From positions 62,001 through 126,000 of the IMG/VR virus record IMGVR_UViG_3300032675_000001: a stretch of 64,000 nt of DNA; one strand, written 5' to 3'. Below are positions 10,436 through 26,100 of the stretch, piece by piece. Every line of letters starts with the position of its first letter. Position 1 is the first letter of the stretch. Both the position numbers and the translations under genes were made by a program. A model generated the notes under the pieces. That model worked only from the letters and a program-made list of their open reading frames with translations, did not search any database and had not been told where the DNA came from.

Positions 10436-10688
10436 AAAGCATTTCCAACTTATTCAGTGCATCATTTAGAGTTGGATTAGTTTCTGCAAGCCGAATTATA
10501 CGCATCATTCGCTGAGAACGTATAGCGAGTTCCTGTTGCTTAAGCACTTCCGGGTCTTCCCAATGTAGTTCACGAGTTAGAGAACCAAAAGATCGCTTGT
10601 AAATGGTTTTCCCCCCGTCAGGTGACTCAAATATCACCCGACGAGAGGTATCCACCATCATGATTTCCGGCTTACTTCCGGTGGTCAT
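10401..10688 (-). CDS. Hypothetical protein (FESPDGGKT motif)
   Basis: IFESPDGGKTIYKR; start uncertain. Confidence 0.65.
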   Translation of the reverse strand: MTTGSKPEIMMVDTSRRVIFESPDGGKTIYKRSFGSLTRELHWEDPEVLKQQELAIRSQRMMRIIRLAETNPTLNDALNKLEMLYELVKDNEERE

Positions 10689-11973
10689 CATAGATTGCCC
10701 AAGCACCGAACGGCGGGTTCGGATCAGGATCACCGTGAATGATCCACGTGGTGTCACAGTAATCTGCATCACCCCACGAACCAAACGGATAACCGTCAGT
10801 GAAAACGATCAGCCGTTCGGGCACGATTGCTTCTTCCTTGAGAAATTTGAAAATGCAATCAAAGTCAGTGCCACCACCACCATGGATTTGATATTCATCA
10901 ACAGTGTCAAGGTTCTCAGAAGTGAACTCCTGCATGTTGTAGACCTGAGTATCAAAGCAAGCAACACGGATACGGAAACCGTCAAACGCTTCCATCATAC
11001 CGGCAACTTCCGAGAGGAATGCCTGACCCTGCTTCATGGAAATGGAACCCGACATGTCAATCATGACAACAACGTCGATTTCTTCACCGGGGTTCATACC
11101 GGGCATGACAGCATCCATGTGCCAGCCGCGACGAGAAGGACGCATCCAGCTATAATCCGACTTGATAGCAGAGGTCAGATTGGTCTGGATCAGTTCGCGC
11201 CAAGGCATGACCGGATCAGTAAGCTGCTTGATCATGCGTTCAACGCCCTTCGGAATCGAACCAGCTTCGGCAGTAGACGCAGCGTTCAGGATAGCCTGCT
11301 TCACTTCCTGACGAATCTGTTCCTTTTCAGCCTCAGACAGTTGAGGACGGCCCTTGCCCCTACGACCTTCGCCATCCTTGCCATCTTCGCCTTCGCCTTC
11401 GCTATCACCATCACCGTCGATGTGATCGTCCAGCATCTTGTCCAGAAGGTCTTGAACGTTGATGTACTGGACATTCTTCATGAGGTCATCATAGATAGCC
11501 TCAGCAGCCCAGTTTTCATACTTGGCATCGTACAAGCAAGGAACAGTGGTGATGAACTCACCAACCTTGTGACGCTTCAAGTCAGCATTCACAGCATAGT
11601 CATCAGCAATGTTCCAGATTTCAGGATCGCGATTGTCACGACGACCGAGGTGATCGTAGACAACATGCAGAACTTCGTGACCGACGAGGAATTCAACTTC
11701 CTTCGTCTTGAGCATGTTGATGAAGCGCGAGTTGTAATAGAAACGCTGACCATCAGTAGCAGCAGTAGTCAGCCATTCGTCAGCGTTGACAAGCGTGAGA
11801 CGAGTAGCAAGATTGCCGAAAAACGAATGACGAAGCAAAAGACCGATACGAGCAGTAACCAGACGCTCACGGGCAATATGATCAACCTTCGGATCGGTGG
11901 GTCCAACAAGGTTTTCAAACTTCTTGCTGCGCGAACGCTTGGACTTCTTGGGGGCAGTGGTATTGGTAGTCAT
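10672..11973 (-). CDS. Metallopeptidase-like + VWA domain protein (DUF2201 type)
   Basis: TAATDG, HEVLH (HExxH), DMSGS (MIDAS DxSxS), GGGGTDF and VFTDGY motifs. Confidence 0.9.
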   Translation of the reverse strand: MTTNTTAPKKSKRSRSKKFENLVGPTDPKVDHIARERLVTARIGLLLRHSFFGNLATRLTLVNADEWLTTAATDGQRFYYNSRFINMLKTKEVEFLVGHEVLHVVYDHLGRRDNRDPEIWNIADDYAVNADLKRHKVGEFITTVPCLYDAKYENWAAEAIYDDLMKNVQYINVQDLLDKMLDDHIDGDGDSEGEGEDGKDGEGRRGKGRPQLSEAEKEQIRQEVKQAILNAASTAEAGSIPKGVERMIKQLTDPVMPWRELIQTNLTSAIKSDYSWMRPSRRGWHMDAVMPGMNPGEEIDVVVMIDMSGSISMKQGQAFLSEVAGMMEAFDGFRIRVACFDTQVYNMQEFTSENLDTVDEYQIHGGGGTDFDCIFKFLKEEAIVPERLIVFTDGYPFGSWGDADYCDTTWIIHGDPDPNPPFGAWAIYDDHRK

Positions 11974-12002
11974 TGTGGTTACCTTTCGTTGTTGATGAAG
12001 TG

Positions 12003-12031
12003 ACATTACGCTATACACGGAGCGATGTCAA
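12003..12031 (-). promoter_or_regulatory. Sigma70-type promoter for the VWA gene
   Basis: TTGACA-17nt-TAATGT with an upstream T-tract. Confidence 0.6.
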
Positions 12032-12048: not shown

Positions 12049-12147
12049 CTATTGCCCATATAACAAACTTCGCCAGAGCAGCACCAGTGCTACTCCAGCG
12101 ATGAGTATGGCAAGAAATGTTAAAATAGATAGTAGCATATTTGCCAT
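12049..12147 (-). CDS. Small single-TM peptide (32 aa)
   Basis: Not in the track. MANMLLSILTFLAILIAGVALVLLWRSLLYGQ*. Confidence 0.4.
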   Translation of the reverse strand: MANMLLSILTFLAILIAGVALVLLWRSLLYGQ

Positions 12148-12150
12148 TCC

Positions 12151-12183
12151 AAAAAAGTGGGGAGGGTGTCTCTACCCTCCCCA
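12151..12183 (-). terminator. Rho-independent terminator after the AAA+ gene
   Basis: TGGGGAGGGT-AGAGAC-ACCCTCCCCA followed by C and TTTTTT. Confidence 0.85.
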
Positions 12184-12196
12184 TGGAGCCGCTGGA

Positions 12197-13294
12197 TTAG
12201 TTACCAGCTTCCACGATGTACTTGCCGTACTTCTTGTGGAACTCGTCAAAGTTGCTCAACTGAGAAGGCTCAATCGGCAGCTTGTAGGTCTTGAGGGCAA
12301 TCTTGGCACCCATCACGACCAACTCCGTTTCAAAGTTCTTCATGATGTACTCAAAGAAGTTGTCAGCCATTTCGTGGAACTTCTTGTTGTCAGCCGTCTT
12401 GTTCTGGAGGGCATCACGCAGTTCATAGCACATGGAAATGGTCAGCGAGTACATGGCCGAGATTTCCTTGACCTGCAGGTCCTTCACCTTGCCCGAGAGA
12501 ATGTCGGCAGGGTTCGGCATACGACCAGCAACCTTGCGGTGAGCCATGAACTTGGTGGCGAGACCATCACCAATGGAACCAGCGACCAGGTTGAACAGCG
12601 TATCATTGTCAACGTCTTCATCGTTGAGCAGATCGCTGACAAAGCACCACGAACGCGGAGTAGCGAACGCACGGCTGGACGACTTGGCTTCAAAGTCATA
12701 ACCATCCTGCTTGGAGAACGAGAGATAACCAACAACGTCCTTGTGGATACCCTTGTTCACGGCCCACTGCTGCCAAGCATTGAAGTCATAGCGCATTTCA
12801 ATGTGAACGAAACGGTTGGCCAGCGGCATCGGCATACGATAGGTGACACCCTTGTCGCTGTCACGGTTACCGGCAGCAACGATCACCACGTTGTCAGGCA
12901 GCTTGTACTTGCCGATGCGACGGTTCAGGATCAACTGATAACCAGCAGCCTGCACGGCAGGCGGAGCCGAGTTCATTTCGTCAAGGAACAGAACGACGAT
13001 GGGATAGTTCTTGCAGACTTCTTCGCTCGGAAGGTCAACAGGTTCAGCCCAGTCCATCTTGCCGATGTCCTTGTTGAAGAAGGGGATACCGCGAACGTCA
13101 GTCGGTTCCATCTGCGCCATACGCATATCGTACATATAGCCGCCGAGGTCGTCGGTGATTTCCTGCACGACTTCCGACTTGCCGATGCCCGGAGGACCCC
13201 AGAGGAAGACAGGACGCTTTGCCTTGAAAGCAGTGAGGAGGGCCTTGCGGGCCTGAATCGAGGTAACGGTAAGGGTGTCAGATACTTGAGACAT
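12197..13294 (-). CDS. MoxR-like AAA+ ATPase
   Basis: GPPGIGKS (Walker A), LFLDEMN (Walker B), AAGN, LANRF and TPRSW motifs. GGAG RBS before MSQVSD. Confidence 0.92.
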   Translation of the reverse strand: MSQVSDTLTVTSIQARKALLTAFKAKRPVFLWGPPGIGKSEVVQEITDDLGGYMYDMRMAQMEPTDVRGIPFFNKDIGKMDWAEPVDLPSEEVCKNYPIVVLFLDEMNSAPPAVQAAGYQLILNRRIGKYKLPDNVVIVAAGNRDSDKGVTYRMPMPLANRFVHIEMRYDFNAWQQWAVNKGIHKDVVGYLSFSKQDGYDFEAKSSSRAFATPRSWCFVSDLLNDEDVDNDTLFNLVAGSIGDGLATKFMAHRKVAGRMPNPADILSGKVKDLQVKEISAMYSLTISMCYELRDALQNKTADNKKFHEMADNFFEYIMKNFETELVVMGAKIALKTYKLPIEPSQLSNFDEFHKKYGKYIVEAGN

Positions 13295-13359
13295 GGTATT
13301 AAGCTCCATTAGGTTAAAAGTGATAGAGAGTGTTTTCCTTTGTTGCTCCCTATGAACCC

Positions 13360-16422: not shown

Positions 16423-16944
16423 TTAAATCGTCAGACCCAACATGTCAAGACCTTTTTTATGGAAACATTTGGTATTCTCAATCGCTTCTTCTGTACTCAA
16501 TGCGGCGAAACCCTTAGAATGCATTTCTTCATCCGGTAGAATTTTGGAAAACACCTCACGAATGTCTTCGTCAATCTCATTGTCTGCGGCCAATGCACGA
16601 ATGCGAACAAGACGCATTGCTTCGGCATGATGACCTGCTGCGGTTACTTCTTCAAAAGTCTGGACATTTCCTAGGATTTCACTCCAATAACGGTCATGTT
16701 CATATGTTGGGGTTGGCAGTTCAATGTTACGAGCGGCGAGAAGTTCTCCTACCCAGTCGCGGTGCTTAGCTTCATCAGAAGCAATCTTTTCCAAAAGTAC
16801 TTTGCCTTTTCCTTCTGTCGTTTTGGCGAGTGATTCAATTCGTTCTGCGGCAAGAGCTTCACCGATATATTGACGCTGCAACCAGTGATTAAGCTTTTCA
16901 GGAGATGCTTTTACCTCGTTGAGCCACTGTTCGGTAGTTTTCAT
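16423..16944 (-). CDS. Ferritin-like di-iron protein
   Basis: Two E...DExxH units (DEAKH, DEEMH). AGGAG RBS before MKTTEQ; the track start at 17007 lies inside the tmRNA. Confidence 0.8.
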   Translation of the reverse strand: MKTTEQWLNEVKASPEKLNHWLQRQYIGEALAAERIESLAKTTEGKGKVLLEKIASDEAKHRDWVGELLAARNIELPTPTYEHDRYWSEILGNVQTFEEVTAAGHHAEAMRLVRIRALAADNEIDEDIREVFSKILPDEEMHSKGFAALSTEEAIENTKCFHKKGLDMLGLTI

Positions 16945-16961
16945 GATTAATCTCCTATGTA

Positions 16962-17268
16962 AAGTGGCCCGTTCTGTTTCTAGGTGGAGCCGTACCCAGG
17001 AAATCATGCCGCTAGGGCAATATCCATAGTTGAGTTATCGTTTGCAGATAATTCTATTTAGTCTATAATGCGACTAACCAACCAGTCTACTCTCACCTTC
17101 AACTCGTAGTCGAATCCTAAATACGCCCCCATCAACTACTCTGAATCGCTGTGTTTCCGCCAGACAGCTTTTCACCCTTTATAGCGGCGGGTTATCAGAG
17201 TAGATGGTGGAGGCGAGGGGAGTCGCACCCCTGTCCTACGCAGCATTCAGTTTGTATCAACAACTGAT
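16962..17268 (-). ncRNA. ssrA: Circularly permuted (two-piece) tmRNA; outer ends approximate
   Basis: Acceptor piece ...GACAGGGGTGCGACTCCCCTCGCCTCCACCA ends at 17205. A 74-nt intervening segment (17131..17204) is closed by CTACTCTGA/TCAGAGTAG. The coding piece starts GGGGGCGTATTTAGGATTCGAC at 17130. Tag frame 17045..17004 = ANDNSTMDIALAA*. Confidence 0.95.
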
Positions 17269-17299
17269 AACTTACTTATACACTATTCACAGAAACATG

Positions 17300-17491
17300 T
17301 CAAGAAATAACTTGAACCATGTAGTTTTTAGATTTTTCCTCAAACTCTGCTCGTTTGCGATCCATATCAATCTTGCGAAGGAGCAAAGGATCGTTGGGCT
17401 TGATCACATATCTGTTTTTTTCAAGAACAGCCCGAAGACGTTTTTGATCATCCGTGAAAGTTTCACGGTCGCTGTTTATTTTTCTAGCCAT
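17300..17491 (-). CDS. Hypothetical basic protein
   Basis: Short ORF in operon orientation. Confidence 0.55.
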   Translation of the reverse strand: MARKINSDRETFTDDQKRLRAVLEKNRYVIKPNDPLLLRKIDMDRKRAEFEEKSKNYMVQVIS

Positions 17492-17533
17492 TAAAGTTGT
17501 CCTTTGAACCACAATATTTAACATTACCCATCG

Positions 17534-18658
17534 TTAGTCTCTATCAAGTCCCACATACTCATGAGAAAAGCAAACACGCTTGATGTGCTTATCTTTATGG
17601 TTCTTTTCCTTGACGGCGCGGTTGGTTATATAATCTTTTCTACCCTTACCGTTCTTTGACGTTCCTCTCCACCGTGGGGAAGAGTTTCTGTATTCACCCA
17701 AACGTGGATGTGCAGTTTTAGAAAAAAACCTACAACCTCTTGCTAAGAAGATTTCACCAATCGCATCACTTAAACGGGTTCCAAATCCAAGACCCTGATA
17801 CTCTGGTAGAATAACGGTTCTATGACCTCTCCATGCATTCTTGAAGTTGCCATTTGGAAATGGAAGAGCAGCAGAAAATCCTACTATTTCACCATCCCAA
17901 ATAGCTAACCAGCATTGTGCAGTTCTATTAAGGTTTCCGTCAAGATAGTGATGGTGGCGGAAGATTGGCCAAACTTCGGTTGAACAAGGTATGATTTCCA
18001 GTTTGATTTCAGGTCTTGGCCGAAGTGACCCCCTTCCGGTCATCTGACCGGTCATAGTGTCATATACCCAATCGGGCTGTAACCATTCAATCACATCATA
18101 ATGGCATGTTGCGAGAACAATGTTCTTTAGGTTATGTTTGTCAACATATCTACGAATGGCAACAGAACACGATTTAGCTACATTCCTGTCAATAACAGAT
18201 GTGAACTCATCAAATACCATACCTGACACCAATGACCTTGCGAGATTAGCGCGAAACTGTTCTCCATTTGAAAGAACATGATATGGCCTGAGCCAAGATG
18301 GAATGGTGTTTAATCCCACAGCAGACAGTCGTTCTGCAGCTTGATCTGCCGATTCAAAGTGTGAGCAGATTGCTTTAGTTTCATCCCATTCAGGTTGTTC
18401 AGTAGAACCAAACGATTTCAGCAGAGATGACTTACCTGATCCAGATGGACCAACAATCAACCCGATACCATAATCTTCCGGAATACTTGGAACATTTGGA
18501 ACAGTAAATGTGGTAGTCCCGTTGAACTCATAGTCAAACATAGATGATACTGCTTTAGTGATATCATCTTGAAATACAGATACCGATATATCTCTACTCG
18601 GTATCTTATCGTTCTCAAACTCAAATAGAGATGCTATACTATCGTGCATATTATTCAT
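17534..18658 (-). CDS. ABC-type ATPase fused to GNAT acetyltransferase
   Basis: GPSGSGKS, LSNGEQFR, DEFTS and TCHYD; C-terminal R.VILPEYQGLGFG acetyl-CoA motif. Confidence 0.88.
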   Translation of the reverse strand: MNNMHDSIASLFEFENDKIPSRDISVSVFQDDITKAVSSMFDYEFNGTTTFTVPNVPSIPEDYGIGLIVGPSGSGKSSLLKSFGSTEQPEWDETKAICSHFESADQAAERLSAVGLNTIPSWLRPYHVLSNGEQFRANLARSLVSGMVFDEFTSVIDRNVAKSCSVAIRRYVDKHNLKNIVLATCHYDVIEWLQPDWVYDTMTGQMTGRGSLRPRPEIKLEIIPCSTEVWPIFRHHHYLDGNLNRTAQCWLAIWDGEIVGFSAALPFPNGNFKNAWRGHRTVILPEYQGLGFGTRLSDAIGEIFLARGCRFFSKTAHPRLGEYRNSSPRWRGTSKNGKGRKDYITNRAVKEKNHKDKHIKRVCFSHEYVGLDRD

Positions 18659-19001
18659 CTGCTATTTCAAACAGGTCCCCATATGGGTTCTGTTCTTTTT
18701 CGTATTGCTCTTTTGCATTCTGAATACGTGCTTGTGAAATCTTGATATAATCTGGATCAAGATCAATGCCAATATAGTTGAAGCCTTCAAGCATCGCAGC
18801 CTTACCTGTTGAACCAGAACCATTGAATGGATCAAGAACAGTCCCACCCTTTGGTGTTACTAAACGACACAGATACTTCATCAAGTCAGTTGGTTTTACC
18901 GCCTACGTGGGGTGAGTATTTAAATACTCACCCCGAACCTCCTTTACATATATCTTCAACTCATTTGGTAGCGAGTCGAAGTCTTTCTTTGATAATTCCA
19001 T
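18651..19001 (-). CDS. C-terminal fragment of the N6/N4 DNA methyltransferase, with an in-frame TAG at 18903..18905
   Basis: MELSKKDFDSLPNELKIYVKEVRGEYLNTHPT*AVKPTDLMKYLCRLVTPKGGTVLDPFNGSGSTG... carries the SAM-binding DPFxGSG motif that 19712..22267 lacks. Confidence 0.8.
18909..18934. repeat. Perfect 26-bp palindrome
   Basis: GGGGTGAGTATTTAAATACTCACCCC. Confidence 0.95.
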
Positions 19002-19734
19002 TGTTATTTTTCATTTCCTCTATGACTTCATGCTCCCAGAATCTCAAAACAGTAAATCCACATTTCCTCAAATATGCATCTTGTGATTTGTCTAAGTTCA
19101 TTCTTTTTTGCTGCCTAAGGTCCGGAATTCCATTTTTCAATTTTGATGGATGTCCGTGCCAGTAATCACCATCCCATTGAATGATGATTTTTTTATCCGG
19201 TATTAGAACGTCAACTGATATTTTGTCTGCTATTAGTATTTGTTCTTCAAATATAATATCCTCGTTCAATAATATCTGCCTTCCGAGTAACTCTAATTTG
19301 TTTGGTCCTTTTTTTCTATTCTGTGCCATGTTTCCATTAGTAGATGCTCTCCTGATCCATTCTTCATCTGTATTTCTGCATTCTATGGTGCAGTAAGTTG
19401 GGTTATTATCTTTCAGTCGGCTTTTACTCCAATAGAAAGTATTATGACACATTTTACATTCAAATGCAACTTTATTTTTTGCCTGAAAATCATTAGCACA
19501 CTTATGACTGCAGAAATGATTAGCATGTGCCTCTAATGTCGCCAGACTCCTATACACTTGATTACCACACATAGCACATTCAACGATTCGTCCAGTTTTT
19601 CTTTGTGGTTTAGGGCTGGTCCTGCTACAATATGCACTGCAATATTGCCTATTTGCTGGCATATCTGCAGTATGAGGTTTTCCGCATCCCTTACATATTA
19701 TCGTTCTCGTTTTATATTTGTTTTTTCTGTACAT
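18961..19734 (-). mobile_element. Free-standing Vsr/DUF559-like endonuclease with N-terminal zinc-ribbon repeats, inserted in the methyltransferase gene
   Basis: Three CxxC...YCS/FCS/YCT..C units; VD..I...IIIQWDGDYWH and D....D..L...G.TVLRFWE motifs. Confidence 0.85.
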
Positions 19735-22267
19735 TTAATACTCCATTACTTTCGTTTGAAGTATTTATATGTTTTTTGATTTTTTCAATAATATCTGGTG
19801 GCGTATTTTCATCAATCAGATAACGCGAAACTTTATCCAATCCGCTGTTACGATCTGATCTGCTGGCTTTAGCAGCATAATACATTCTCTGAACATTCTC
19901 ATAATCCAGTGTGTCTTCCTCTGTGAATTCACAAGACTTAAAAAATCTTGCTGCTGATCCTGTGTCGCCTCGTTTCGCTGATGGAACTCTTTGATATTCA
20001 CCATAACAGTTGGTATTATCATCTCCTGTATGTGATGGTTCTGTTCCCTTTACATCGCCTTGTTGACCCTTACTTTCAGGAAACAATGCGACAACTTCAT
20101 CACTGCCATCATGAATGATATTAGCGGGGAATCTTCCTTTTAGTTCTGGTCGGTCAAACTCAGTTCTAGGTCTATGATCAGATTTTCTATAGTAACAGTT
20201 TGTGCAAATATCTTGATCTTCTTCTACTGGATTTAGTGTATCAGGAGCATAATCATCGCATCCCATATATTCCGAAGAGCCAGCAAGTGATCCTGACTTC
20301 GCCGTGCATTTTCCTTGCGGCGTTGCACTTAGCTTATCCTCTTCCGACATATAATCAACCCGACAATCATCAATATTGATTCCACCAGTTCCATGCTTTA
20401 GAACATTCTTCGCTACAGTCTTTTCAGATAGTGGCTTCCTAGCAACGCAAATAGGCTCCCACGCTGGCTTCAGTGCCGTGCCCCAGCCATCCCATTGTTT
20501 TGCTTCTTCTGTTGCTGGTGCAGTAACGTCCCAAGTTTCATAAACAGTTGTTCCACCAACAGTTGGCAATGCGGATTTTCCACTAGTGCTTCTAGCTTTA
20601 ATCTGCTGACCAATTACCCTTCGTTCAATATTATTATAAATGCCGGTCAATCTTTCAGAAGTTTCTTCATCCGGATTGAGCACTTCCTTCATGCGTTTCC
20701 ATTTTTCCTGTGGTGGCAACAAATTAACCCATGGGTCAAACTTTTTTCCATCTGCTGGTAGTGTTAGATAGTTACTTGCTCTGAACCCACACTCAGTGTC
20801 AATCTGCTTTCGCGTTTTCCCACTTTTTTTAAATATATTAGTCAGGATATTCTTTAGTTCAATTACTTCTTCATCATCGGCAGGATTTTCCATATGCTTA
20901 TCAATAGCCTTACCGATGTTCATAGACTTAGGAAAGCCAGAGTTTCCAGTAGTGAATGCTTTACCATCCCTTACTGCGACGAATGCGCCAGTAGGAACCT
21001 TAACACACCAAATCTTACCTTCATATTCAATCGGAGTTACAGTTGCCAGAGTGGTTTTATGTCCTTTCCAGCCTCGTATAACTTGTGATCCGAGTTGTTG
21101 GCAAATAACATCAGATTCTCCGCCCGATTGTCCAATGGATCGTGGTTTATATGATGCACTACTTCCGTGCGAGTAAGCATTCTGTTTAAATGCTTCGCTA
21201 CTATTAGACGGTGCTCCATGACATACCCGTCTCTCCTCGCCATAGGCAGGAAGTCCACTGGACAACGAACATACTTCGCTCCTTTGTAGTTTCCATGTGA
21301 GCGACGGTATGTTACTCCACCCTTCCAAGCAGGGTTGGTTTCTCCAGTCATGCGGTCCACCAAATCTTGTTCCGACTTCTCGGACCAGTTGGCTCTCCCC
21401 TTGTGTGCGTGAGCTTTCCATTCTATTCCCCGCAAAACTCCGTTGCATGTTTTTGAACACACAGGAGTTTTCACTCGTTGTAAATGTTTTATATTTCTGT
21501 AGAACGTTATCCCACATACTTGACAAGTATGTTGTTGTTTTCCAATATGTTCGTTTATAGGTGGCGATCCAGTATTGGAACGACCTATTGACTTGTTGGA
21601 ACATTGTTTGCTGCAAGTTTTGTTTCTTATAGCCTGTTCTTTGGTATGAGTCTGATAAGGATTGTTGCAAACCAGACAGGTTTTCCAAAAAGGGTATATT
21701 CTCTTGCGAACTAAGTTCTTCTGCAAAAGCGAATATTTCTCTTCCGCCTCGTTCAACAATGCAACGATGGTTTCGGCTGACGATTTGGTCTGTATGATCA
21801 GATTGTATTCTGTAAGCGGTATCCTTGATGTCATATTCATAAACTTCCTCAACTGGCATATAACTATATGTTTGAGTATATTTATCATAACACAAGACTA
21901 AATCGTTTGGTTTTATTGCTGTGTATGGTTTTATGCCGTTTGGCGTCACAATCTCTGTGTCATCAGATAGACAGCCATAGACCCACCCAATCTGATCGCG
22001 AATATCAAATCCAGCGTCTTCAATCGCTACCACCATTCTATGATATGTGCGAGTACCAGAGAATGCCAACAGGTGTCCGCCTGGCTTCAATACACGCATC
22101 ACCTCTGACCACATCTCAACACTATATGCGATGCCAGAACTGTCCCACGACTTACCCATGAAACCAAGTTCATATGGCGGATCAGTTACCACAGAATCAA
22201 CAGAGTTTTCTTCCATGGTTTTTAATACGTCAACACAGTTGCCGTTATGTAATACAAAGCTACTCAT
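19712..22267 (-). CDS. N6-adenine/N4-cytosine DNA methyltransferase (beta-type motif order), N-terminal fragment, intein-containing
   Basis: DPPY, W.YG|SGFPKS after intein removal, LKPAWEPI..ARKP, GRFPAN, SAARFF and AKASRSDRN motifs. Confidence 0.92.
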   Translation of the reverse strand: MSSFVLHNGNCVDVLKTMEENSVDSVVTDPPYELGFMGKSWDSSGIAYSVEMWSEVMRVLKPGGHLLAFSGTRTYHRMVVAIEDAGFDIRDQIGWVYGCLSDDTEIVTPNGIKPYTAIKPNDLVLCYDKYTQTYSYMPVEEVYEYDIKDTAYRIQSDHTDQIVSRNHRCIVERGGREIFAFAEELSSQENIPFLENLSGLQQSLSDSYQRTGYKKQNLQQTMFQQVNRSFQYWIATYKRTYWKTTTYLSSMWDNVLQKYKTFTTSENSCVFKNMQRSFAGNRMESSRTQGESQLVREVGTRFGGPHDWRNQPCLEGWSNIPSLTWKLQRSEVCSLSSGLPAYGEERRVCHGAPSNSSEAFKQNAYSHGSSASYKPRSIGQSGGESDVICQQLGSQVIRGWKGHKTTLATVTPIEYEGKIWCVKVPTGAFVAVRDGKAFTTGNSGFPKSMNIGKAIDKHMENPADDEEVIELKNILTNIFKKSGKTRKQIDTECGFRASNYLTLPADGKKFDPWVNLLPPQEKWKRMKEVLNPDEETSERLTGIYNNIERRVIGQQIKARSTSGKSALPTVGGTTVYETWDVTAPATEEAKQWDGWGTALKPAWEPICVARKPLSEKTVAKNVLKHGTGGINIDDCRVDYMSEEDKLSATPQGKCTAKSGSLAGSSEYMGCDDYAPDTLNPVEEDQDICTNCYYRKSDHRPRTEFDRPELKGRFPANIIHDGSDEVVALFPESKGQQGDVKGTEPSHTGDDNTNCYGEYQRVPSAKRGDTGSAARFFKSCEFTEEDTLDYENVQRMYYAAKASRSDRNSGLDKVSRYLIDENTPPDIIEKIKKHINTSNESNGVLNVQKKQI
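19732..19769 (-). promoter_or_regulatory. TATAAATA late promoter plus RBS-sequestering hairpin for the Vsr-like endonuclease
   Basis: TATAAATA at 19762..19769. AATACTTCA pairs with TGGAGTATT, which contains the GGAG RBS. Confidence 0.7.
20942..21973 (-). mobile_element. Intein (344 aa) in the DNA methyltransferase
   Basis: Begins CLSDDTEIVT; block B SRNHR; block F/G YEGKIWCVKVPTGAFVAVRDGKAFTTGN followed by Ser. Removal restores YG-SGFPKS. Confidence 0.93.
21037..21840 (-). CDS. HNH homing endonuclease encoded in the +1 frame inside the intein
   Basis: CxxC zinc repeats, NPAWKGG, and GYVMEHRLIVAKHL...EVVHHINHDPLDNRAENL. GAGGA RBS 5 nt before ATG 21840; ATAAATA at 21879..21885. Confidence 0.9.
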   Translation of the reverse strand: MNMTSRIPLTEYNLIIQTKSSAETIVALLNEAEEKYSLLQKNLVRKRIYPFWKTCLVCNNPYQTHTKEQAIRNKTCSKQCSNKSIGRSNTGSPPINEHIGKQQHTCQVCGITFYRNIKHLQRVKTPVCSKTCNGVLRGIEWKAHAHKGRANWSEKSEQDLVDRMTGETNPAWKGGVTYRRSHGNYKGAKYVRCPVDFLPMARRDGYVMEHRLIVAKHLNRMLTRTEVVHHINHDPLDNRAENLMLFANNSDHKLYEAGKDIKPLWQL

Positions 22268-22321
22268 GAAATCATCATTCCTTATAGATGGATGTAATAT
22301 AGCGCAATATGGAGTTAATGT

Positions 22322-22795
22322 CTATTGTTTTGGGCAAACCGATGAGGTTGACATAAGATACCAGCCATCTTTGAACTCACTGCTTATGCTAAAGCCCAAC
22401 TTTGTATAAAAGTCAGGAATATCAGTGGATAAAACCACCTCTTGCCCTTTTGCCTTGCTAAAATATATAGCTTCTCTGGTTATTCGTTTTGCTATTCCTT
22501 GGCCTCTATGGGATTCGGCAACTGCAACCCACGATAGGGCAAAGAAATGTTGAATAGCTAACATGTTCAGTGCAGCGAAACCAACAAGCTCCTCGCCATC
22601 TTCTACGAGGATATAATACTTGGTTGCATTCTGCAGCGAAACCAAAAAGTCAATCTGTTCTAACTTGATCTTTTTCTGTTTCGGGTCTTGTATTAAAATA
22701 GCATCATCTACATGAAAGAATGGATAACATTGATACAGTAATCCAGTTACCTTTTCAATGTTATCCAGTTCTTCAACTATTCTTAGTCGGATCAT
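22322..22795 (-). CDS. GNAT acetyltransferase
   Basis: VAV.ESHRGQGIA and FYTKLGF motifs. Confidence 0.88.
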   Translation of the reverse strand: MIRLRIVEELDNIEKVTGLLYQCYPFFHVDDAILIQDPKQKKIKLEQIDFLVSLQNATKYYILVEDGEELVGFAALNMLAIQHFFALSWVAVAESHRGQGIAKRITREAIYFSKAKGQEVVLSTDIPDFYTKLGFSISSEFKDGWYLMSTSSVCPKQ

Positions 22796-23106
22796 TCGCC
22801 GTAGCAAATGGTCTGACGAGTTACAAAGTTATTATACTGATCGTAAGTATCACGGACTTCACATGTGCCACGGAAATGATCGTAGTAGCGATATGCAATA
22901 ATCGTATGATACACTGGATAAGTAGGTGCAACTACTACCGTGTGTGGCTGAGTTGATTCAACGATGACACCACCGATGATTCCCCCAATAACCAAAGGAG
23001 CAACCCATCTTCCTCCACCACCATGCCAGTGACCGGGGCGAGCGTCCGCCATTGCTGGTGCAGTTAGAAGTGCCAATCCCGCTAATGCTGATACAAGTTT
23101 CTTCAT
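22792..23106 (-). CDS. Exported Gly-rich protein
   Basis: Signal peptide ending AMA/ADA, HGGGG and hydrophobic IGGIIGG. Upstream TTGACA-17nt-TATATT promoter. Confidence 0.7.
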   Translation of the reverse strand: MKKLVSALAGLALLTAPAMADARPGHWHGGGGRWVAPLVIGGIIGGVIVESTQPHTVVVAPTYPVYHTIIAYRYYDHFRGTCEVRDTYDQYNNFVTRQTICYGE

Positions 23107-23166
23107 AGTTTTTCTCCTTACTTGCTAATATATTTACTTTTTGATCAAATGTCAAGAGTTAATGTG

Positions 23167-26100
23167 TTAAAGTTGCTCAAAACGCTCACGAAGCCATGCC
23201 CATTCGTAACTTAGCTTCAGCTTATCAAACTCACCGTTTACATCGTCATAGTATTCATCAGCGTCTAATGCACCCTTGATACTATATTCCGAGAACTCCC
23301 CTTGACCCTTGTTTAACCATGCTTCCAGCCTTTCTCGCGAAATGTCAGTATCATCAGCCTTTAGCTTCAACACTTCACGAAATGCCGTTCTCCACGTGGA
23401 GAATGGATCGGTATTGTACTGTGCAATACCTGATAGCAGTGGCACTACTTCATGTTCATCATCCAACGTAAAGTCAAGCCCATTTCCTACATTAGCTAAT
23501 GTAAGTTTCTTATTGTAACAAATGAGGCCCTGGTGGCCGTATATCAAACCATTTACTGGATTTTTGGCATGGAAAATATAATGCTTCGGAACCTGCATTC
23601 TATCTGGTTGCCAGTTGAAGTCAAACTTTAAACTGACTTTCAGCTTAGCAAATACAGTAAAGCACCATGGAGTGTCACTTGCCTCAACGGCGGCATGATA
23701 CGCGGCTACACGACCATTTACACCATCAACTCTAACAACACGATTCTTCAAGTTTTTGGTTGCTTGAAGTAGATGTTCCCAGTTTTCTTCTGCACCAGTT
23801 TCACCATTGCTCAAATATACAATGTCCAGTGGCCTTGACATCGCAAGTTTAGGTGCACGTTTGATGTAAGGATAGTCATACAGTTCCTTCTTAACGTGAT
23901 CCTTTACTTCCTTGGGAACAGTGATTCGGGTTGCGCCCGTGCTGGTGATAATGATATTCTTGTTCTCTGGTGCCCACAAGCACATAGGCTCAACATCTTG
24001 AACATTGACGCTAGCATTATCTTCCGTAATGATGGTAGCATATGGAAAACCATCAACCTTTTTAATGGCATTAACATGCGTATCATCGCTTGTAACGATG
24101 ATTGGCTCCGGAAGTCTATTGGTCTTGATGGTCCCATTGTAGTTTACCTTATGGTAATCTTCCAACACTTGCATATCGTCAATGATTTCACGAGTCTTGT
24201 TTACGTCAATAAAAAATGTATCGCCAAACTTAAGCTTACCGCTCGGGAAGACATGAAGATGATCACGAGCAAATGGATCAACCGTATATGAGAAATCAAA
24301 GTTGGAATAATCACATACGCTACTGCATATCCAAAGATAATGCTCTTTCTTCTGATGCTGCCTAGAGATAATATTTCTCAACGTGTTAAGATAGCTTTCG
24401 TCATACGGAATAGTGGTTACATGTTTTCCGCTTGCTTTGCTTTTTAATAGTTCAACTACCTTTTCCGTTTCTTTATTACCATGATCAATAACCACAATGT
24501 CATGGACACACTGTGTTGCAGTTGCACGAATGTTCTTGACAAAGTTGAGGTTACTTAGATGCTCAATGATCTTAATCCACTTGGTATCTTCGCCAAATGT
24601 CTCACGGTTAACCAAGAATGTGCTACCCCAATGTGACCACTGAGTTCCGAACACATGGACCATTTTCATCTGCCATGGGTTAGGATAATATTCAAAGTCA
24701 AAATTGGTGTAATCCAGTTCTGAGTTTAGTACCCAAAACAGATCGGTAGTAGATCGGTTGGAACACCGATTTATAGTATCAACCCAAGAGTTAAGATAAC
24801 GTGTCTTTTGTATGTTAGGGTACTTTGCCTTTAACTCGTCAAATCTTGCAAGAGACTCTGGGTTGCCCTTATCAACATAGAACATATCAGACTTTTTGAA
24901 TAACTTAAACAATGTTTTGTCATCAAGCTTTTCATCAACTACCCAATTGATTTCTCTGTGGCCCTTTAACCACATATTGGCATTGATCAAGTATGTCTGT
25001 GTCAACTCACTGTCAGATGATCCAAATGCATGAACATACTCTGCTTGTTCAATGGTCGGTCTCCATGAGAAATCAAAATCAGTGTAATCAAGATCAGAAT
25101 TTAGTGCCCAAAAAATCTCACCATGGTGTTCTTCAACAAGATCACTCAGAGTGGTCTTAACGTAATACCGAGGGTAATCAGAAACCACATTCTCATCAAT
25201 ACTAAGCCATTCCATTTTAACGATTTCACCGTTTGTATTTGGCGAAACATATCGTGGACCATCTTCTGGATTTTCAATGGTTCCAAACTGATAGATATAT
25301 GGAGGAGACAACTCATCAGGATGCCATGAAAAGTCAAACGTGTCAACATTTATTCCATCAGGAATGACCCAGTTTTCTTTTGATGGAAGACGCATTGCCG
25401 TTGGATTCCCAACATAAAAGTTATCTGTTGCGCCCGGAACAATATACATTGGACCACCGGTTTTCTGATGCTGAGTACCGAAGATGTAGATATATGGATC
25501 ATTGGTATCATCAGGATGCCATGAATAATCAAAATCTCCGATTACTGTTGGATCGGTAATGGTCCATTTAGACTTGTCTGGTTTACGAATGGCTTTAATG
25601 ATACGAGTATCAATATACTTTAACGGAGAACTTTCTGTTGCACCCGGAGCAATATATCTTGGACCGCCTGTCTTTTGCCACTGAGTTCCGAACTGATAGA
25701 TATATGGCTGATCGTCCAAATATGGATGCCAAGAGAAATCAAATGCATCAACATCAATCTCATCGGGATTGTATTCCCAGTTGTCTCTATTAGGAAGCAC
25801 TTTGGCAGTTTGACATTCTTCATACTTGACTGCGACACCACCCGGAACAGTATATGTAGGACCACCAGTCAATGCCCACTGTGTAGGGAACTGATAGATA
25901 TAGGGTGGTGCAGTATCATCAGGATGCCAAGAAAAGTCAAAACCTTCCATGTCCACATTATCCGGAATGGTCCAGTTTTTCATGCTTGGATGACGAATGG
26001 CTTTCACATCATCAACATATTTTACTTCAGTGGCATTAGGCATTACATAACGTGGACCGCCTGTCTTCTGCCACTGAGTTCCAAACTGATAGATATATTT

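Follow-up and report, generated by a model that had tools for sequence, protein, structure and literature searches.

Why should the near-invariant HPTVKP motif of a jumbo-phage DNA methyltransferase (MTase) be interrupted by an in-frame stop codon and exactly six extra nucleotides, and is the gene nevertheless expressed? The locus lies in a window of 64,000 nucleotides belonging to the 360,683-bp IMG/VR phage contig UViG_3300032675_000001. All genes of the window are on the minus strand and read normally under code 11. A megablast of the locus and of 24 kb of the window against GenBank phages found no match. On the minus strand the sequence reads NTHPT-TAG-GCG-VKPTDLM, whereas homologous MTases read NNHPTVKPT without interruption and a 98%-identical allele has HPT directly followed by VKP. 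The first-pass annotation had proposed that peptidyl-tRNA-Thr leaves the ACG codon at the stop and re-pairs on GCG, with a G:U pair at the first position, as a small analogue of the bypass in T4 gene 60. Comparative analysis confirms the observation and supports this interpretation. The features of the locus are listed below.

Features of the interrupted methyltransferase locus (coordinates are those of the window)
Feature	Coordinates	Strand	Description and basis
N-terminal part of the split MTase	19712..22267	-	851-aa ORF with DPPY motif; contains an intein; ends in a cassette-borne C-terminal tail; Pfam PF01555, E=7.8e-10; alignment to phage MTases
Cassette	about 19840..18900	-	C-terminal tail, endonuclease, leader, stop and landing triplet; roughly 940 nt
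C-terminal extension (CTE) of the N part	19712..19840	-	About 43 aa; left end of the cassette (boundary approximate, +/-15 nt); overlaps the endonuclease start by 23 nt; tail motif ILDENTP.D.IEKI.K.INTS shared with the cassettes of L008 and L010
Homing-endonuclease-like gene	18961..19734	-	257 aa; Zn-ribbon repeats plus a DUF559/Vsr-like nuclease; Pfam PF04480, E=7.7e-8
ORF1, N-terminal leader (NTE) of the C part	18906..19001	-	32 codons from ATG 19001, MELSKKDFDSLPNELKIYVKEVRGEYLNTHPT; overlaps the endonuclease ORF out of frame by 41 nt
Shine-Dalgarno-like element AAGGAGGT	18937..18944	-	Inside ORF1, 2 nt 5' of the hairpin
Hairpin	18909..18934	-	Perfect 13+13 palindrome; 3' arm made of the Asn-Thr-His-Pro codons, ending at the last base of the Pro codon
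Take-off codon ACG	18906..18908	-	Thr of HPT
Stop codon TAG	18903..18905	-	In frame, directly 3' of the take-off codon
Proposed landing triplet GCG	18900..18902	-	Pairs with anticodon CGU with one G:U; last 3 nt of the cassette
ORF2, AdoMet-binding C-terminal part of the MTase	18651..18899	-	VKPTDLMKYL...DPFNGSGSTGK..., 82 codons plus stop; Pfam PF01555, E=1e-16

We first asked whether the six nucleotides are genuine. The stretch occurs without any difference in Logan contigs of a 2020 lake study (one of them 15,050 nt long, at depth 20.8) and of an independent 2023 freshwater study, where the contig covers 18711..19074. The called C-terminal gene product is on 12 contigs. Contigs drop rare variants, and a minority allele lacking the 6 nt therefore cannot be excluded. 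The nearest short C-fragment sits at a contig end and was uninformative. As RNA, the palindrome folds at -20.5 kcal/mol (z = -3.2), and 0 of 200 shuffled sequences fold as well.

The gene is heavily colonised by selfish elements. Its two parts together carry the DPPY, HPTxKP and FxGSG motifs in the order of a beta-class N6/N4 MTase. The N part also holds an intein inserted exactly in WVYG|SGFPKS. The endonuclease-like protein has 153 homologs at E<=1e-5. In three other very large phage contigs (L008, L010 and L011) it again sits between an MTase N part and a short C part. There the junctions read CAC CCA ACG TAG CG GTA AAA CCA (L008 and L010) and CAC CCA ACT TAA TC GTA AAA CCT (L011), that is, 5 extra nt, which places ORF2 in another frame. 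Each of them has a hairpin whose 3' arm is the x-His-Pro codons, with AGGAG lying 5' of it.

We then collected further sites, both by endonuclease-based retrieval from viral contigs and by a pattern scan (HPT, TRR, 2-4 nt, VKP, xxLM) of viral, genome and metagenome contigs. Together they gave 88 distinct bona fide sites in phage, prophage and metagenome PF01555 genes. Gaps are 5 nt (39 sites), 6 nt (25) or 7 nt (24). Scans of viral contigs found no gap of 3-4 nt, and the only two matches with 8-33 nt were chance hits outside MTase genes. The stop is TGA in 42 sites, TAG in 28 and TAA in 18; since the pattern required TRR and fixed the take-off codon as ACN, these features are partly by construction. 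The landing triplet, on the other hand, was left unconstrained, yet the triplet just 5' of the Val codon is [A/G][C/T]N in 88 of 88 sites (ACN 38, GCN 41, ATN 7, GTN 2). Those are exactly the triplets that U36 and G35 of a tRNA-Thr anticodon can pair with by Watson-Crick or G:U pairs. The third base follows the Y/R class of the take-off codon in 78 of 88 sites (Fisher p = 2e-12). Counting one site per 80%-identity cluster, the R-Y rule holds in 25 of 25 clusters for gaps of 6-7 nt (p = 9e-16 against 0.25) and, for the second base, in 16 of 16 for 5-nt gaps. The sites are phylogenetically related, so these p-values overstate independence even after clustering. The exact ACG-TAG-GCG form recurs in four other clusters and, inside one cluster of closely related ORF2s, the gap changes length and stop codon while take-off and landing change together.

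The hairpin is likewise tied to the gap. A perfect stem of at least 8 bp ending at the Pro codon is present at 75 of 88 gapped sites, while the longest among 125 uninterrupted HPTVKP sites is 6 bp (median 2-3); mean MFE is -21.9 against -7.8 kcal/mol. RNAalifold on a plain MAFFT alignment of 77 sites gave no structure, because variable loops put the 5' arms out of register. We therefore turned to stem-anchored counting, in which the variable positions -1, -3 and -4 are paired in 88-99% of sites against 46-63% in shuffles. In a same-geometry subset of 21 sequences, 98.6% of cells are paired and 30 cells changed on both sides against 8.4 in shuffles, with 0 of 500 shuffles as high. This subset was chosen for having the stem, so its percentage of paired cells is biased, and the unbiased comparison is that of gapped against uninterrupted sites. 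GGAG or GAGG lies 3-9 nt 5' of the stem in 82% of gapped sites against 23% of uninterrupted ones. Endonuclease-split alleles without a gap (L015 and L020) have no such stem; the hairpin therefore goes with the gap, not with the split.

Is the sequence downstream of the stop maintained? ORF2 runs 63-144 codons at all 79 sites where its stop lies within the locus, motif I is present in 84 of 87, and median dN/dS is 0.25, indicating purifying selection. Related phages with the same downstream gene carry unsplit, intein-free alleles, L334 (535 aa) and L335 (452 aa), and the ORF2 of the window differs from the uninterrupted L334 by 5 nt and 0 aa. Mycobacteriophage Harley (gapped) differs from Mahavrat (uninterrupted, same genus) by 12 nt and 1 aa, with a dN/dS of 0.12.

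The same alleles delimit the cassette. DNA identity to L334 is 98.3% over 300 nt and begins exactly at 18899, the G of the GTA Val codon. On the left, homology to unsplit alleles stops at 19851 (L335) or earlier, and the tail that follows is cassette-borne; a duplicated AAATACT and an 11-nt match to L335, GGAGTATTAAA, were accordingly not retained as marks of insertion. The cassette has thus replaced the parental linker and its N-x-HPT codons with a tail for the N part, the endonuclease gene, and a leader ending in its own copy of N-T-H-P-T followed by the stop and landing triplet. A group I or II intron is not supported: an Rfam search at E<=1 over 17000..23500 found only the tmRNA, the non-ORF flanks are about 25 and 60 nt, the ORFs overlap and the leader is conserved as protein.

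The sites occur in two contexts. In the split class (49 sites), the leader is 29-35 codons from its ATG, with the pattern M.IS..QY..LP..L..YF.KE.G...N.HPT, and the endonuclease is directly upstream in 42 sites, 29 on the same strand and 13 on the opposite strand. In the unsplit class (29 sites), the site lies inside an MTase ORF of 265-850 codons with no endonuclease nearby, and most have a 5-nt gap of the TGACY type with a perfect ACY landing. Cultured examples exist: a 316-nt query covering Harley's leader, gap and ORF2 finds 84 mycobacteriophage records that hold at least 80% of it, and about 70 further records match only from the gap onward, inside single unsplit MTase genes. Harley has lost the endonuclease, leaving a 76-nt spacer, while its relative L093 keeps one on the opposite strand.

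The best explanation is that TAG GCG forms a programmed +6 'stop-hop', to which we assign a probability of roughly 0.78, on comparative evidence only. In the mechanism we infer, a ribosome translating from ATG 19001 reaches ACG in the P site with UAG in the A site, where release-factor recognition is slow. The 5' arm of the hairpin has already emerged, whereas the 3' arm occupies positions -1 to -13, in the E site and exit channel, so that zipping of the stem can only be completed if the mRNA moves in the 5' direction. A movement of 5-7 nt fits the length of the basal GGGGUG/CACCCC part of the stem, and AGGAGG may act as an anchor by pairing with the anti-Shine-Dalgarno sequence of 16S rRNA. 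Peptidyl-tRNA-Thr would let go of ACG, the mRNA slide by 6 nt, and the anticodon re-pair with GCG (G:U, C-G, G-C) before Val-tRNA enters the A site. The product would contain the exact family motif in the junction peptide GEYLNTHPTVKPTDLMK (in Harley, ...SVAHPTVKPLTLMR), and the C fragment would then assemble with the N fragment, after intein splicing, into an active enzyme. Pairing of mRNA as it exits the ribosome has been proposed to drive forward bypassing in gene 60 (bioRxiv 10.1101/2024.12.09.627546). Here, however, the hairpin is 5' of the take-off codon, and both the zipping step and the role of the Shine-Dalgarno-like sequence are inference. The landing pairing in the window is also imperfect at its first position, although GCN is the commonest landing type, and synthetic stop-hops are reported as low-efficiency. 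By analogy with T4 MobA and gene 60, the gap may serve to break the DNA target in the most conserved, least mutable stretch of the gene, which would make carriers immune to the endonuclease without changing the protein. The endonuclease-free unsplit class fits a spread of such immunity on its own.

The alternative that survives best, although unlikely, is termination at TAG followed by reinitiation, with the folded hairpin bringing AGGAGG close as a split ribosome-binding site and an HPT|VKP-split enzyme reassembling from two polypeptides. The conservation of the hairpin and Shine-Dalgarno-like element would be consistent with this view, the MTase tolerates splitting about 30 aa upstream, and a few landing triplets are ATG or GTG (9 of 88 are ATN or GTN). 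In the unsplit class, 17 of 29 Val codons are GTG, so reinitiation cannot be excluded there. However, the Val codon is GTA in the window and GTA, GTC or GTT in 46 of 49 split sites, and the landing triplet is mostly GCN or ACN, leaving no start codon. The next in-frame ATG (18881) is the conserved Met of the xxLM motif rather than a special feature. Nor does reinitiation explain why the landing triplet must pair with tRNA-Thr or why its third base follows the take-off codon.

A dead gene or immunity scar, with nothing made downstream of the stop, is about as doubtful. The phage has other selfish insertions in the same gene (intein, HNH, endonuclease), phage MTases are often dispensable, and there is no expression evidence. 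Yet ORF2 is intact in all sites with sequence available, and the landing rule, the hairpin and the 5-7-nt limit are conserved from 38%-GC jumbo phages to 65%-GC mycobacteriophages; a scar needs none of these features.

Readthrough at 6-nt gaps, or +1/-1 frameshifting at 7- and 5-nt gaps, appears less likely still. In the window the gap is in frame, and a suppressor tRNA or leaky UAG would give HPT-X-A-VKP. But 63 of 88 sites need a frame change and none has a slippery sequence, three different mechanisms would be needed for one conserved anatomy, and residues would be inserted into a near-invariant motif; only a hop gives one product rule for all three gap lengths. A tRNA search of the window found only a tmRNA, the rest of the 360-kb genome not having been searched for suppressor tRNAs. 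Reassignment of TAG is not supported either, since ORFs are long under code 11, TAG ends at least 3 ordinary ORFs in the window and relatives use TGA and TAA at the same site.

The other alternatives listed in the first-pass annotation find no support in relatives: no promoter-like or terminator-like site lies at the hairpin, the loop sequence and the AGGCGG suggested for a restart at 18884/18881 are not conserved, and the GTG 'minigene' has no constant frame or length, GUG being there because it pairs with the CAC His codon. An assembly or sequencing artefact, suggested only by one low-depth assembly that breaks at 18909, the edge of the palindrome, is refuted for practical purposes by the identical sequence in contigs of two independent studies and by recurrence in cultured, Sanger- or Illumina-finished mycobacteriophage genomes.

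The closest known system is the T4 gene 60 bypass with its MobA homing-endonuclease cassette (Bonocora et al. 2011; Manning & Atkins, bioRxiv 10.1101/2022.08.31.505936), and the analogy goes further than the first-pass annotation had seen. There too, a free-standing endonuclease splits an enzyme gene, a tail is added to the upstream part and a leader to the downstream part, the leader overlaps the endonuclease ORF out of frame and carries its own copy of the replaced coding stretch, and a take-off codon is followed directly by a stop and then by a landing triplet at which the insert ends. Some lineages have lost the endonuclease but kept the apparent bypass (Harley), and some split genes have no bypass (L015, L020). 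On the other hand, the gap is 5-7 nt instead of 50 nt (20 nt in Aeromonas) and contains no take-off stem-loop, the conserved hairpin being built from coding sequence. The take-off tRNA is Thr instead of Gly, the landing triplet is often near-cognate, the endonuclease is DUF559/Vsr-like instead of MobA, and the host gene is a DNA methyltransferase instead of topoisomerase. Hosts range from Actinobacteria to freshwater jumbo-phage hosts, and there is an endonuclease-free class inside unsplit genes.

Synthetic +5 and +6 stop-hops in E. coli (Weiss, Dunn, Atkins & Gesteland 1987; reviewed in PMC5009743) also involve a peptidyl-tRNA that detaches at a codon followed by a stop and re-pairs on a matched codon just beyond it, so that with a 6-nt hop 9 nt specify one amino acid; those were engineered and without dedicated stimulators. 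The mitochondrial 'byps' of Magnusiomyces capitatus (Lang et al. 2014, cited in PMC5009743) are 27-55-nt GC-rich inserts scattered over many genes, with no endonuclease and no single conserved position. In the prfB (RF2) +1 frameshift, a stop in the A site creates the pause and an upstream Shine-Dalgarno-like sequence acts on the elongating ribosome, but the shift moves 1 nt to an overlapping codon, the Shine-Dalgarno sequence is 3 nt from the site, there is no hairpin, and regulation is through RF2, whereas here all three stops are used and there is no link to one release factor. Finally, nrdA of Aeh1, split by MobE, has added tails that help the halves reassemble but no stop or gap in the downstream half.

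We found no previous description of this element in the literature searched, which left out most subscription journals. The reference review says of natural in-frame stop-hopping that 'no occurences are known' (PMC5009743), the 2022 survey of gene 60 homologs calls the bypass cassette unique, and PRFect lists methyltransferases among its SEA-PHAGES 'false positives', without analysis. It is probable, though slightly less so than the hop itself, that these sites represent a second, independently evolved and much more widespread family of endonuclease-linked bypass elements, natural +5/+6/+7 stop-hops of peptidyl-tRNA-Thr driven by zipping of a coding-sequence hairpin behind the ribosome, occurring from mycobacteriophages to 360-kb freshwater phages and also as endonuclease-free 'immunised' alleles. 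They would be the first natural stop-hops.

Programmed bypassing has rested almost entirely on T4 gene 60 and its homologs, plus yeast mitochondria. In annotations, the mycobacteriophage genes are filed as a 29-aa 'hypothetical protein' plus a 67-aa 'methyltransferase', and gene callers and pseudogene filters will keep miscalling them. The family is experimentally tractable, as about 84 cultured Mycobacterium smegmatis phage records carry it. It would add about 90 natural sequence variants of a minimal hop of 5-7 nt, following a simple rule (a stop, then a tRNA-Thr-pairable triplet, with a 10-bp hairpin ending one codon before take-off), and a direct test of the idea that mRNA refolding behind the ribosome drives forward sliding. 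It would also provide a second example of selfish DNA protecting itself by inserting bases that the ribosome then ignores.

The N-terminal part of the methyltransferase (MTase) carries an intein, spanning amino acids 99-442 of this part and inserted exactly in WVYG/SGFPKS. Within the intein, in a different frame, lies a 283-aa ORF encoding an HNH_3 endonuclease. The intein frame has 0 stops over those 852 nt, while the third frame has 26, and 0 of 5000 codon-order shuffles were stop-free. This looks like a dual-coding overlap kept open by selection, so that the intein can still be translated through an out-of-frame endonuclease gene.

Features noted in and around the split methyltransferase locus and elsewhere in the window
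Feature	Position	Strand	Remarks
Antisense ORF pair 1	10603..12003 / 10672..12018	+ / -	
Antisense ORF pair 2	12101..13312 / 12197..13309	+ / -	
Permuted (two-piece) tmRNA gene	17004..17268	-	ARAGORN 16913..17297
N-terminal leader	18906..19001		
C-terminal tail of the N part	19712..19840		
Intein in the MTase N part	20942..21973	-	aa 99-442
HNH_3 endonuclease ORF nested in the intein	21037..21888	-	283 aa

Close relatives of this phage, represented by the related phage contigs L334 and L335, carry the same MTase unsplit, without the intein, the endonuclease or the gap, and with the same downstream GNAT/ABC-like gene. The population is therefore polymorphic for all three selfish insertions. After the GNAT/ABC-like gene, about 1.6 kb downstream of the hop site, this 360-kb phage contig also contains a permuted (two-piece) tmRNA gene (Rfam RF04321, 85.5 bits), with the tag peptide ANDNSTMDIALAA. 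Elsewhere in the window, two pairs of long antisense ORFs (about 370-466 aa on both strands) lie in a block of higher G+C (47% against about 40%); the minus-strand ones match PHROG HNH endonuclease and ATPase families.

In GC-rich (actinobacterial-type) cassettes (loci L093, L102, L116, L118, L121, L124, L149, L152, L153, L165, L170, L188 and L195), the DUF559 endonuclease lies on the strand opposite to the MTase, yet the leader, hairpin and hop are kept. A different insertion context for the same endonuclease family was found in L009, an 88,849-bp Logan contig (SRR30872625): here, a homolog of the endonuclease (61% identity) sits after an intact 493-aa MTase that has TKP instead of VKP and no gap, next to two more MTase genes. 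Endonuclease-free full-length MTase genes of the unsplit class (for example at loci L104, L108, L110, L125, L131 and L132) carry mostly the 5-nt form ACY-TG-ACY-GTG, where the landing codon is a perfect copy of the take-off codon and overlaps the last base of TGA. In the zero frame, a second TGA follows one codon later.

The cassette-borne C-terminal tail of the N part (L.D..TP.D.IEKI) and the N-terminal leader (DF..LP.EL..Y..E) loosely resemble each other and are conserved from jumbo phages to mycobacteriophages (loci L008, L010 and L115). They may be the pieces that let the two halves of the enzyme reassemble or, alternatively, the leader may act as a nascent-peptide signal.
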